Shown in pieces: positions 18,853-24,220 of a stretch of 64,000 bases of DNA (position 1 is its first letter; every line of letters begins with the position of its first letter). Source of the DNA: Hyphochytrium catenoides (lineage: Eukaryota; Protista; Hyphochytriomycota). Location of the stretch: NCBI GenBank assembly GCA_900088475.1, contig FLMG01002416.1, positions 1 through 64,000 on the forward strand. Direction: 5' to 3'. A program made the position numbers and the translations under genes. Below the pieces are notes generated by a model, which did no database searches, was not told the DNA's origin, and saw nothing but the letters and a program-made list of their open reading frames with translations.

Positions 18853-19731
18853 ATGGATGCCAGAGCAGCAGCGGAGCAGCAGAAAATGCTAGAGGCTAGA
18901 GGCCATGGTAGGAGGACACCTTGTCGCTGCAATTTCTCTCGGCTGTTTCTGCTCAAAAGTAGTTTGGGATCAAGGCACCCCAATCCCAGAGACCTGGTCT
19001 CGACGCTCTGTCTTTTCTCTGAATTATGCTCTGTCTTGCACTCACTGCTGTCTAACTTTTGGAACGCTAATGTTGTTGGTGAACTCTATCTTGTGTGCGC
19101 CCTTGTGACTTCAATCACAGCCAATCATCCAGTTGCAGCTGAGGCTGTGGATTTTCACGTTGTGGAGGCAGAGAAGGTTGAGGGTGCTCCGGCGAATGTT
19201 CCTACAGTTGAGGTCACGGCAACCGCAGCGGCCGTGCCTGTGATCTTACAGGCTGAACCAGTCCCAGCGCATCAGCAACTTCCCATCATTGGTAGGTCCT
19301 ACCACTTCGATGAAGATTCTGACTTTGTGCTCAATCAAGGCAAAATTCCTCACTCCTGAACCTTGGAAAATGACTGTCTTAGTTCTGCACCTCTGAGACT
19401 TGCTGTTGCCCTAGAAGTCCCTCATCACTTTGCTCAAACTCTACGGCGCCTTCCGCCACTCTCACTCTCTCCATAGTTCATTAAATATATGTATCTCTAA
19501 GTTTCTCCTGTCCGTCTGTCGCGCTTTCCCTATCCCTTCTCTTGCCTCTCGATCTTCTTCATCCCTCTTTTTAACTTGGTTACCCTCTCTCTTCCTTCCG
19601 TTGCAGCGCGTTGCCGAGATTGTCAGACCGAGTACCACCGGGATCCGAATGCTAAGGAGGCAAGCTGGGAGTACTATCGCTGCCAACGATGCCTGAAGGG
19701 TGGTCCTCTTAGAAACTGCAGAATCTTCTAA
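18853..19731 (+). CDS. Small (116 aa) protein with C-terminal CxxC..CxxC zinc ribbon and CaaX box, 3 exons
   Basis: Exons 18853-18907, 19121-19291 and 19607-19731 (351 nt; phase-1 GT-AG introns) encode MDARAAAEQQKMLEARGHANHPVAAEAV..LPIIARCRDCQTEYHRDPNAKEASWEYYRCQRCLKGGPLRNCRIF*. Confidence 0.75.
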
Positions 19732-19981: not shown

Positions 19982-22900
19982 CTAGAAATGAAGCCAGTCG
20001 TTGTCCATGGTCTCTATGCCGTCTAGAGCATCAATGAGGTCCTGGTCAATGATGTTCTGGTTGCGCATTTCTTCGCTGAAAAGTTCTCCCAGCAGCTGAG
20101 AGAGTCCTGGAGAGCCTGGTGGCAGGATGTCGAACTCTCCTGCTGCCGGAGGAGGTGTGAGAGAAGGGGGCATCGGAACCGGACTCATCTCCCCGATGGT
20201 CATGGGAGGTGTCATGACGCTTGGGGGTGTGACTGGAGAAATGGGTGGCACGGCTGCAAGAGGCAGAGTAGTAGTGTTAGAAGGCAAGAGTTCCGATGGG
20301 CTGCCGCTTCCAATATCAAGGCTATCACTAGTTAGACGGAAAATATGGCCAAAAACAGGTGTTGGGCTAGGAAAGAGGTGCGAAGCCAAGACGACAGAGA
20401 ATGTGGCAAAGATAGACGGTCAGGCACTTACGAGTTGTGGCAGAGGGATACTTGGGTATGACATAGAAGATAGTCAGCAGGTCCGCTGACTCTGTCGTCT
20501 CGACACAGATCCAAGTTTGGGCGTCAAAAGGCATTCCACTAACATCCACCCATCGCACATGCTCGAAGGTGCCGATAGTGGGACCAGTTTTAGCATCGAA
20601 CTGGGCCAAGTACTTCATCAGCATCGTGGTGAACATATCCTTGTAGTCCAACGGATAGATTAACCTACAGCGACAACGGAAAGCAGGGCGGCCGAAGTTA
20701 TAGGGGTGAACAGCTATGTATAGGGTGAACATCTATGAATGGAAGATTAACGGTGGACGAGGTGCTCAGTAAGAGCTTCACGGGAAGCGTCAGAACGGCG
20801 AACACCCACAGCCCCAGTGCTGAACCGACGTAGGGGATCGACCACGTGTGTAAAGGCAGCTTCCTAGGTAAACCCGCATCCGGGTCCTGACCTCCCTTCT
20901 CTGACATGAACATTGAAAGCAACAGTCCTCCGCCCTTCCTCGGGGCTAGATAAACTTAGGACGCCTACCTTGAGAGAAAATCCTTATCCATACATTCTGC
21001 TGATGTTGCGTCTTCCTCATTGACTCCAAATATCGCTTTTGCCACGTCGTTGAGGAAGTATTTTAGCTGTCCGTCATGGAAGACACGCGTGATAGATGCT
21101 CCTGCCATCTGAGGAGCGATTTTGTACATCTCCTGCAAGCATTGATTGACAGACTTCTTTCGCATAGCAGAAAACATTGCTTGGTGCTTGACTATTGACT
21201 TCGTAAAGGTGTCCAAATCTATTAGTGGGTCGAGAAAGAGACATGGCAGAGCGAACAGAAGAGAACAATGAGAAACACCTTCATAATCTTAGAGCCCAGA
21301 AGAAGCACTATCTGTGTCGCCTGCCCACAACATGACTAGAGAGGAGACCATAAGACCAAGAACTGGCACTGAGAGAGGACAGATTATGGCAAAACAGTTT
21401 TGCAAGAGCTTATAGAGGAGACCATAAGCCGAAGAACTGGCGCTTAGAGAGTGCAGATGATGGCAAACAGCTTGCAAGAGTATAGGCAAGAGGGTCCAAT
21501 GCACTGAGCTTTAGCGCTACACTAGCAGATGGTGCAAGTGGTACTGGAAGAGAGCTGACATCACTCTACCTAAACCCTCATCCGTAAGTTCTGAGGCTGC
21601 CTCTGTCCCGAGCAGCTCCTCCAGTGAGATCCCAGCCCGCTTCATAAGCTTCAGACTCATGTCCAGGATGTATTGACTTTTCTTTAAGACTGCCACACGA
21701 AGGTTGTACAAACTAAAGAGAGAAGTCGAGCCACAGAGAAGAGGAATAGCAGTTTAGCCCCACAACAAGCGACATGGGGGCACACGCACGACTCTGGCTC
21801 TTTCTCCATGTCTCGCTCATTGCCTAACAGTTCAACAGTCGTCATCTTTGTCCCTGTAAGAGCCATGAACTTACCAAAACCTCTTCAGCTTGAACCTGGG
21901 AATGCAAGAGTTGTTGGACATGGAATAGATGGCTTCAAAGAGGATCGTGTTGATCTTTTTCGCTTTGGCGGGATCATCAGTAAGTGAGTTAGTCCGTGCG
22001 AGAGCTGCCGCCCTGATGGCTAGAGGGGGCCGACCCCGCCGCCTAGATGAATAGATACAGACTTTTCCAAGGCGGACGCAGCGCGAGCAGGGCTCCTGCC
22101 GGTCACACCTAACTTTAGACAAGCGGCAAGCAGTGCATGAAGCTTGCTGTTTTGCACCCTCGTCTCCCTGCTTATCAGCGGCAGCCGCATCAAGCCCTAC
22201 ATGGGACAATCATGAGATGGCTACCAAGTGTACGGCGTCATAGCCGCCTCCCTTTCACTCCTTCCCGGTCTCACTAGAAGTCTCTCCTCTTAGCCTTTTG
22301 CAGGCACTACTCCAGCTTCTGGGATATGTTCACAATAGGTTGCTCTATTGACCTCCGTCCATTTCTACGCCCTTTGTCAGGAGAGGCACTACGCTCGTTC
22401 TCACCATTCTCCTCCTTCACATGAGAGCCAGTTGCTCTTGCTCCTGCCGGAAAGGACAGTCTTGACTGCACCTGCGCCTGTATATCGTCCACAGAAGGCA
22501 CAGAGGCCTCCTTGCCGGCGACTATGAGCTTATCCATATCCGTGATGAAGCTGGTGTCTGTCAGCACATCTCCTGTCACGCGCATCACCGACTCCACAGT
22601 CTCAAGGCGAAGTCTAAGTACGTTCCGAAGCGCAGAGAAGAGACAACAATAAAAAGAGAGTTAGAGGTAGGGAAAAGTGATAGATCAATAGTAAGCGGAG
22701 GCGGAAGCGCCAATAAAGAGGCAATATGTCAAACTGCATCCCCGCCCCTGGGAGGTCCAAAGAATCAAACAGGAAAAAGTGACTGACGGCAGACGCCGGT
22801 GTGGGCATAGCATATGAAGGGAGCTATGGAGAAGAGATAGAGAAAGCATGAGAAGAGAGACAGTAAGACGGCCAGAGGGTGGCCAGGTGGCCAGCCCAAA

Positions 22901-23157
22901 ATAAAGGGACGGGCTTTGACAGGTTGAAGGCGTTGAGGTCGTCAGAAAGAGAAGCTTTCGACGACAAGGAGAACCAACCTCGTCTTCACTTCTTTGAGAA
23001 AGTCCTGCCATTTGATGTCCTCTCCCACCAGGACAATGTGCGCTTTCTTATCTGAGCCCAGAAGGAAAAGCTGGACGGTTCGAGAGGTCACGCTGCCTGA
23101 CAGCGGGCGCTTGATCATGGACTCGGGCCCTGACATGCTGCTGAGGTCCAACTCCAT
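19982..23157 (-). CDS. Zn(II)2Cys6 binuclear-cluster transcription factor with N-terminal KHA/ubiquitin-like domain, PAS-like domain and acidic tail
   Basis: Exact Zn2Cys6 pattern CTACRLSKVRCDRQEPCSRCVRLGKVC followed by RRRGRPP. Most exons join in phase (EVKTR|LRLETV; RFC|LYNL; FLSR|LIYP); the exon 2/3 junction is unresolved. Acidic-hydrophobic C-terminus IIDQDLIDALDGIETMDNDWLHF. Confidence 0.85.
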
Positions 23158-23404
23158 CCCTGCCCCTATATAATGCTAGAGCTGGGCAGAACACGCCCAG
23201 CAGAGAAAGGATGGAAACCAGGGAGAAATATAAGGAACAACCAGTGGGTACAGATGCGGCACCAAGGGGGCGAGGAAACGAACAGAGACGGTGAGACCAA
23301 GGACGGTCTAGAGAAGCGCTTTGACCCTGTTATTTCTAATAAGTTAGAAAATTTGCTAGAGGACAAGAAAGAGTTGGTATGCGGGAGGGAGAGAAAGCGA
23401 AAGC

Positions 23405-23408
23405 GAGC

Positions 23409-23449
<41 letters not shown>

Positions 23450-23951
23450 GGGGAGGGAGAGAGGGGGTAGTACAAGGTACCTCGCGCTTCAGCGGCGCTG
23501 GGATGGCCGGCTGTCAGCCTCAGTCTTGGGAGATATCATGCACGGCAGTCGGGCGGTGCTCTCCCTCCCTGCTTGATTAGCGGTTCTAAACCTTCTGGGA
23601 CAGTCTGAGGCGCGCCTGCTCTGGCTTCAAGCTCTGGCCTTCTGGCTCGCTCCAAACATCAGTTCGTTTCTTATAAAGAGAGAGAGAGCAAGTAGAGAGA
23701 TAAAGAGACAGAGAGATAAAGAGAGAATGTGAGAGGGAAGAGAGAGAGAGTGGGAGAGAGAGAGAGAGAGAGGGAGGGGGGAAGAGAGCGAGAGAAGAGA
23801 GCGAGAGAGAGAGAGAGAGCGAGAGAGAGACAGAGAGAAGAGAGAGAAGTGGGGAGGGAGAGAGGGGGTAGAACTAGTAGTGATGCTGTACGTGGAGCCA
23901 GAGGCACTGGGAGCTTCTGAATGTTGGTTGTTGGGATGACACGCCTCTCTC

Positions 23952-23993
<42 letters not shown>

Positions 23994-24220
23994 TCCTCTC
24001 GCGCTCTCCATCTGATGACGAAGTTGTTGATGTTGACTCTCTCTCTCCTCCTTTCTCGATGGGGTCAAGAACTCTCTTCTCTTGCTCTGTCTCTGTCTCT
24101 CTCTCTCTCTCTCTCTCTCCCCTCCGAAAACCCATCTCTCCTTCTCTCTATCTCTGTCTCTCTCTTGGCCCTCTTTCTCTGCTTTCCCTCTTGCTCTACT
24201 CCGCCATTTTGTCTCTCTCT
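23405..24220. repeat. (AG)n and (CT)n microsatellite complex upstream of the transcription factor
   Basis: Purine tracts at about 23405-23470 and 23677-23870, followed by pyrimidine tracts at about 23945-24220. Confidence 0.9.

Follow-up and report, generated by a model that had tools for sequence, protein, structure and literature searches.

Zn2Cys6 transcription factors are usually called fungus-specific, and the combination of a Zn2Cys6 cluster with a PAS domain is the hallmark of the fungal AcuK/AcuM/Rds2/Ert1 regulators. A gene of Hyphochytrium catenoides, a stramenopile 'pseudofungus', raises the question of whether a regulator of this kind exists outside the fungi, and of which parts it is made. 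The gene lies on the minus strand of contig FLMG01002416.1 (assembly GCA_900088475.1), in a stretch of 64,000 nucleotides (nt) referred to here as the window. An initial annotation described its product as a ligand-sensing, self-associating factor with three modules: a KHA or ubiquitin-like head, a Zn2Cys6 cluster and a PAS domain, followed by an acidic tail. The parts of this description differ in strength. The gene is real and its product is certainly a Zn2Cys6 factor; a PAS-like domain is probably present; a KHA head is not proven. Taken as a whole, the locus is rather probably a single-copy, seven-exon nuclear gene encoding a Gal4-type Zn2Cys6 activator of about 535 residues with a PAS-like domain.

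The zinc cluster is the secure part. It is formed by the peptide CTACRLSKVRCDRQEPCSRCVRLGKVC in exon 3, the cysteine spacing of which satisfies the canonical C-X2-C-X6-C-X5-12-C-X2-C-X6-8-C rule. Exon 3 matches the Pfam family Zn_clus (PF00172) with an E-value of 4e-10 and 40.1 bits, where the gathering cut-off is 21. A six-frame search of the genome with the same family also finds it, at 22036-22140 (E 1.3e-8, 41.4 bits). The cluster and the RRRGRP linker together occupy residues ~150-186. Judged from its sequence, the Zn2Cys6 domain in exon 3 is certain, and the annotated cluster and RRGRP motif hold in full, with exact cysteine spacing and SSRRRGRPP after the cluster. The claim of a fungal-type Zn2Cys6 factor in a non-fungal protist holds as well, as H. 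catenoides is a stramenopile. Such a factor is expected from earlier surveys. Outside the fungi, a single Zn2Cys6 gene is reported for each of two diatoms, with 24 for Ectocarpus and 71 for Naegleria, and the architectures vary (PMC5611559); others are reported from Nannochloropsis, haptophytes and P. tricornutum (PMC4827209; PMC6779911). Zn2Cys6 genes are on record for brown algae. The six-frame search covered the 61.0-Mb genome in 4759 contigs and detected one Zn_clus locus, the present gene, a count which is a lower bound. With that limit, H. catenoides resembles the diatoms in having a single detected Zn2Cys6 gene. The supplements of the H. catenoides genome paper do not mention Zn_clus (PMC5795050).

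At the other end of the protein, exon 7 is rich in proline (17 of 89 residues) and ends in the acidic stretch that had been annotated; the residue counts bear this out (Table 1). The acidic-hydrophobic tail is a candidate activation domain.

The gene model was obtained by six-frame translation and a search for splice motifs. Seven open segments on the minus strand, separated by six GT..AG introns, form a single frame of 1608 nt with 535 codons plus a stop, and the gene spans 23157..19982 (-). These end points, those of the interval 19982-23157 given in the initial annotation, coincide exactly with the start ATG and the stop codon of the seven-exon model. Every peptide quoted there is found in the minus-strand translation, and the junction codons recreate both of the strings that span introns. 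Exon 1 has an in-frame stop six codons upstream of the ATG at 23157. Intron 1 is a GT..AG intron of 365 nt; its junction codon AG/A (Arg; the slash marks the splice site) yields ...KEVKTR/LRLETV.... Exon 2 has the acceptor cttag/A and the donor G/gtgaga, which is in phase with the exon 3 acceptor tgtag/G. The exon 7 acceptor is ctcttgcag/CC. Across the gene, introns measure 162-365 nt and exons 143-322 nt. These sizes agree with the published means for H. catenoides, which are 208 nt for introns and 228 nt for exons, with 3.64 introns per gene (PMC5795050).

Codon usage provides a separate view of the exons. The usage table was derived from 20 unrelated open reading frames with PAS domains from the same genome, and each exon was scored in six frames. 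The proposed frame is the best of the six in all seven exons. Six exons are clearly positive (exon 1, +0.42; exon 2, +0.40; exon 4, +0.22; exon 5, +0.26; exon 6, +0.35; exon 7, +0.26 bits per codon) and exon 3 is neutral. Seventeen of the 18 intron frames are negative; the remaining one, in intron 3, scores +0.13. Read-through past any of the donors soon meets a stop codon. Two points weigh against the model. A search for sequencing runs lists no RNA run for this stretch, so that the model is built on sequence logic; and the splice sites were picked so as to preserve the frame, which makes the continuity of the frame partly circular. With these points included, it is very likely that exons 1-7 form a single transcript, and the N-terminal exons most likely share it with the zinc-cluster exons.

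Table 1. Features of the zinc-cluster gene, in window coordinates
Feature	Position	Strand	Description
Exon 1	22979..23157	-	179 nt; start ATG at 23157; 26-residue leader, then first half of the ubiquitin-like-patterned module, ending TVQLFLLGSDKKAHIVLVGEDIKWQDFLKEVKT
Exon 2	22405..22613	-	209 nt; opens with LRLETVESVMRVTGDVLTDTSFITDMDKLIV, the second half of the N-terminal module, then a polar linker
Exon 3	21875..22196	-	322 nt; Zn2Cys6 domain, basic linker, beginning of helical region
Exon 4	21570..21712	-	143 nt; amphipathic helical segment, candidate dimerisation or linker region; without a significant match in Pfam
Exon 5	20969..21218	-	250 nt; helical segment, then PAS-like N-terminal half
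Exon 6	20432..20664	-	233 nt; candidate PAS-like C-terminal half, LIYPLDY...RWVDVSGMPFDAQTWICVET...LLTIFYVIP
Exon 7	19982..20253	-	272 nt with stop TAG at 19982-19984; Pro-rich spacer, acidic-hydrophobic tail
Zn2Cys6 binuclear cluster	22057..22137	-	CTACRLSKVRCDRQEPCSRCVRLGKVC in exon 3; C-X2-C-X6-C-X5-C-X2-C-X6-C (regular expression on translation)
RRRGRP basic motif, AT-hook-like core	22027..22044	-	shortly after the sixth Cys, within SSRRRGRPP; any function putative
PAS-like N-terminal half	20989..21111	-	exon 5 residues 36-76, ...GASITRVFHDGQLKYFLNDVAKAIFGVNEEDATSAECM
Acidic C-terminal tail	19985..20149	-	last 55 residues, 12 D/E vs 1 K/R; ends DNDWLHF

The PAS-like region is divided between exons 5 and 6. 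The junction codon of the intervening intron 5, AG/G (Arg), yields ...KDFLSR/LIYPLDY... from exon 5 to exon 6. Domain tests were run exon by exon, so that each saw only half of the domain. Exon 5 contains KYFLNDVAKAIFGVNEEDA and KDFLS. An independent profile was made from 20 PAS domains found in the same genome; exon 5 residues 39-76 align with its positions 9-45 at 12.0 bits. In 200 shuffles the mean is -0.8 and the maximum 4.0 bits (z about 5.8). Among the 917 stop-free segments of >=40 amino acids (aa) in the 64-kb window, the exon 5 segment ranks first, the runner-up reaching 4.6 bits. With hhalign, exon 5 obtains a probability of 55.6%, an E-value of 1.2e-4 and a score of 26.2, where shuffles reach at most 18.9. 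When each of the 20 true PAS N-terminal halves is left out in turn, they score 8-34 bits; the 12 bits of exon 5 are thus at the low end of real PAS domains. An N-terminal PAS half, with the A and B strands, the C and D helices and the N...G core, is supported as recognisable in exon 5.

The second half is harder to place. Exon 6 contains LIYPLDY and RWVDVSGMPFDAQTWICV. Two PAS profiles both align VRWVDVSGMPFD with the H-strand region, in a position co-linear with the exon 5 match. Neither alignment is significant: 18 of 200 shuffles equal it with one profile and 28 of 500 with the other. The spacing between the two exon matches is 46 residues in the query and 42 positions in the profile. AlphaFold2 models exon 6 alone as a helix (6-21) followed by strands at 35-39, 49-55 and 64-70. 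A second PAS half would show its elements in this order; the predicted local distance difference test score (pLDDT) is only 41.6.

A number of results weigh against a PAS fold. Exon 6 scores -0.5 bits with the own-genome profile, under all 20 true PAS C-terminal halves (1.0-26.7 bits in the leave-one-out test). Exon 5 alone is modelled as all-helical with a pLDDT of 46.1, and both single-exon models fall at pLDDT 42-46; values of 41.6 and 46.1 are too low for a fold search, so only secondary structure was used, and cautiously. Neither exon is matched by a Pfam PAS family, even with E-values up to 10 allowed, and genome searches with PAS_9 (PF13426), PAS (PF00989) and PAS_3 (PF08447) do not return the locus. 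An own-genome profile of PAS_3 type gives nothing significant at the exons of the locus. A two-chain complex prediction, with exon 6 as one chain and the tail of exon 5 as the other, scored 0.00, which speaks neither for nor against PAS. On balance, residues ~321-440 likely form a strongly divergent PAS-like domain, and a PAS-like fold in the exon 5/6 region is somewhat better than an even prospect. The annotated PAS domain therefore stands in part: its N-terminal half is found in exon 5, and its C-terminal half in exon 6 is co-linear but weak and lacks a Pfam PAS match.

PAS domains are also found elsewhere in this genome. There are >30 PAS-domain matches genome-wide, several of them within open frames some 800-1200 aa long. 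One open frame of 1189 aa, on contig C4401, carries three adjacent and closely similar PAS domains (C4401:2434-3504). A multi-PAS histidine kinase is listed in the supplement of the H. catenoides paper (PMC5795050).

The N-terminal module comprises residues ~27-91. By eye, these 65 residues, split by intron 1, follow a strand-strand-helix-strand-strand-strand pattern. They resemble KHA domains (PF11834; found in plant Shaker K+ channels and KCTD9) and DCX-type domains in a hydrophobic pattern of ~65 residues that ends in D-x-L-x-V. Unlike those domains, exons 1 and 2 have no statistical match. The KHA and beta-grasp tests were run per exon, and each saw half of the module. None of them supports a KHA head: Pfam, including KHA PF11834, does not match exon 1 or exon 2; the KHA family search of the genome has its sole match at another locus; BLASTP of the N-terminal exons against the genome's own KHA exon finds nothing; and the CIDE-N and DCX family searches do not match the locus. 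Hidden Markov model (HMM) and hhalign comparisons of exons 1 and 2 with a narrow profile of five KHA orthologues give background scores, equalled by 215 of 500 shuffles in one case and by 186 of 500 in the other. It should be noted that these negatives are weak, because intron 1 would halve the domain. The annotated KHA or ubiquitin-like head thus finds no support in Pfam, BLASTP, HMM, hhalign, CIDE-N or DCX searches, all of half-domains, and the sequence cannot tell whether the module is a KHA or a beta-grasp domain. A ubiquitin-like fold has a little under an even chance; membership of the KHA family is unlikely. An ESM Atlas search with exon 1 gave no usable match. One candidate, a match of exon 2 (0.85) to the Byr2 Ras-binding domain in PDB, lies outside the putative domain and was rejected.

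The only KHA match of the genome is in a different gene, at C3870:50000-50750 (-), where a KHA/DCX-type ubiquitin-like domain (PF11834, 35.8 bits) is fused to a Ras-like small GTPase. Short contigs in Logan and ENA (e.g. SRR28521184) carry copies of this KHA-Ras gene with 70-93% identity. A close relative of the organism is therefore present in public read sets.

Relatives of the zinc-cluster gene were sought widely. A phmmer search with exon 6 of 1.84 billion representative proteins returned four matches, none of them a PAS protein or a fungal Zn2Cys6 factor; the four are repeat proteins (DUF11, ankyrin and WD40) and were dismissed as spurious. Searches of PDB with exons 1, 2, 5 and 6 by phmmer gave nothing acceptable, and ESM Atlas gave no usable match to exon 6. 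Scans of metagenome contigs with exons 6 and 3 found no relative, and a word search with exon 3 found none in the range of 58-185 aa. The genome itself has no paralogue of exon 1 or exon 6 and no second haplotype copy of the gene. Neither the phmmer search with exon 6, nor the metagenome scans, nor the word search with exon 3 yielded an orthologue for a conservation test, and this counts against the proposed protein. That the exons are missing from data which hold a close relative suggests low coverage or fast divergence. In the literature, no description of Zn2Cys6 with PAS outside the fungi, nor of a fusion of KHA with Zn2Cys6, was found. The annotated novelty of the architecture is thus retained for the three-part layout, of which no description was found, and is lost for the two-part Zn2Cys6 and PAS layout, which is well known in fungi.

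Three other explanations of the locus have to be weighed. The exon 5/6 domain of a Zn2Cys6 activator might not be a PAS domain at all, but a lineage-specific alpha/beta or mostly helical one, with the exon 5 motif (N-x7-G, EE) present by chance or convergence. This is a minority view that deserves some weight: it would account for the missing Pfam PAS matches of both exons, for an exon 6 score below every true C-terminal half, for the helices modelled in exon 5, and for an exon 6 with no usable atlas match and no PAS protein among 1.84 billion sequences. What it explains less well is that the exon 5 match spans 37 profile positions, which is more than the motif, and belongs to the top segment of the window; that two profiles place exon 6 co-linearly and with correct spacing, and a helix and three strands are predicted there; and that the region, at ~120 residues, is PAS-sized.

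The gene could also be two genes, in which exons 1-2 encode a small stand-alone protein that runs to a stop at 22310, and exons 3-7 encode the factor from another start. The exon 2 frame does stay open for 32 codons beyond the proposed donor, the intron 1 donor gttggt is weak, and the lack of a listed RNA run leaves room for such a division. However, the sole methionine of exon 3 is its residue 92, after the zinc cluster, and none lies ahead of the cluster. Inspection by eye indicates that the ATGs in the 208-nt gap before exon 3 end in stops before the exon 3 frame is reached. Exon 3 consequently requires an upstream exon, of which exon 2 is the closest. The same strand has no further coding-like segment upstream of the gene to about 24.8 kb, and the exon 2 donor and exon 3 acceptor are in phase. 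A division into two genes is improbable on this evidence, and one transcript is preferred. That the pseudofungus recently acquired a fungal AcuK/AcuM (ERT1-family) gene by horizontal transfer is more improbable still. Fungus-to-oomycete gene transfers are on record (PMC5611559), and the order of Zn2Cys6 then PAS-like domain is shared with AcuK/AcuM. Against a transfer, exon 6 has no similarity to any fungal protein detectable by phmmer, the gene has six host-type introns and host-like codon usage, the fungal family lacks the extra N-terminal module, and other stramenopiles carry Zn2Cys6 genes.

The closest known systems by layout are AcuK and AcuM and their relatives (ERT1/Rds2, Aod2/Aod5 and Pas2). 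Like the present protein, with its probable PAS-like domain, these have about 500-700 aa and consist of a Zn2Cys6 cluster, a helical region and then a PAS-type domain. The N-x7-G spacing of the PAS core is common to both: it reads NDVAKAIFG here and NPEFCELVG in Cryptococcus Pas2 (PMC12719309). In AcuK/AcuM, mutations in the PAS domain abolish function, and the domain is thought to mediate contact with the partner (PMC12719309). The differences are of several kinds. The host is a stramenopile instead of a fungus. Outside the zinc cluster, no similarity was detected by phmmer, which was run with exon 6 only. The present protein has the extra N-terminal module, of about 90 residues, ahead of the cluster. 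AcuK and AcuM are paired paralogues, whereas a single Zn_clus locus was detected in the 61 Mb of this genome (a lower bound) and no paralogue of exon 1 or exon 6 was found; because the gene is single-copy, a heterodimer in the style of AcuK/AcuM is not available. As far as its sequence goes, the gene is not filed under the ERT1/AcuK family: beyond the cluster no homology was detected, a paralogous partner is lacking, and the protein carries an additional module. It also differs from the Zn_clus factors of stramenopiles and other protists, for which no published PAS-like domain or ubiquitin-like head was found.

By analogy with its family, the protein may work as follows. The zinc cluster, probably within a dimer, would recognise CGG-type half-sites; activation would come from the acidic tail, which would recruit the transcription machinery. 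If the comparison with AcuK/AcuM is valid, the PAS-like domain might provide contact with itself or with a partner, and possibly signal input. The N-terminal module may act as a protein-interaction handle. The ligand sensing and self-association proposed in the initial annotation are speculative. It is doubtful, though conceivable, that the hyphochytrid's only Zn2Cys6 factor reached the zinc-cluster-plus-PAS logic independently of fungi and added a KHA/DCX-type head, in a lineage-restricted protein with no detectable relatives. If this three-module arrangement were true, either the domains were assembled convergently or the Zn2Cys6-PAS architecture is very old and predates the fungi.

The locus matters for several reasons. 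A fungus-like but unrelated organism carries an apparently single Zn2Cys6 gene, which is fully domesticated and has six host-type introns. Its cluster-then-PAS-like layout is that of the fungal AcuK/AcuM regulators of carbon and respiration. Should the PAS fold and the N-terminal module both be true, the gene would bear on whether zinc-cluster factors, and their combination with PAS, are pre-fungal, were spread by gene transfer, or were reinvented. Being single-copy, it would be a tractable target for a study of regulation by a lone Zn2Cys6 factor in a pseudofungus.

Some minor features were observed in and around the gene. Intron 4 contains a non-coding tandem duplication at 21340-21480, with a 74-bp unit in 1.9 copies at 85% match (Tandem Repeats Finder). 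The ~1 kb upstream of the start codon is filled, at 23383-24197, with dense GA/CT microsatellites and GA-rich repeats of 24-43 bp; these repeats give rise to long spurious 'ERERER' and 'SLSLSL' open frames on both strands. Downstream, a gene on the plus strand converges on the zinc-cluster gene. Its last exon, at 19576-19731 (+), has a terminal CxxC...CxxC motif (CRDCQTEYHRDPNAKEASWEYYRCQRC). The two genes lie tail to tail, with their stops only about 250 bp apart.

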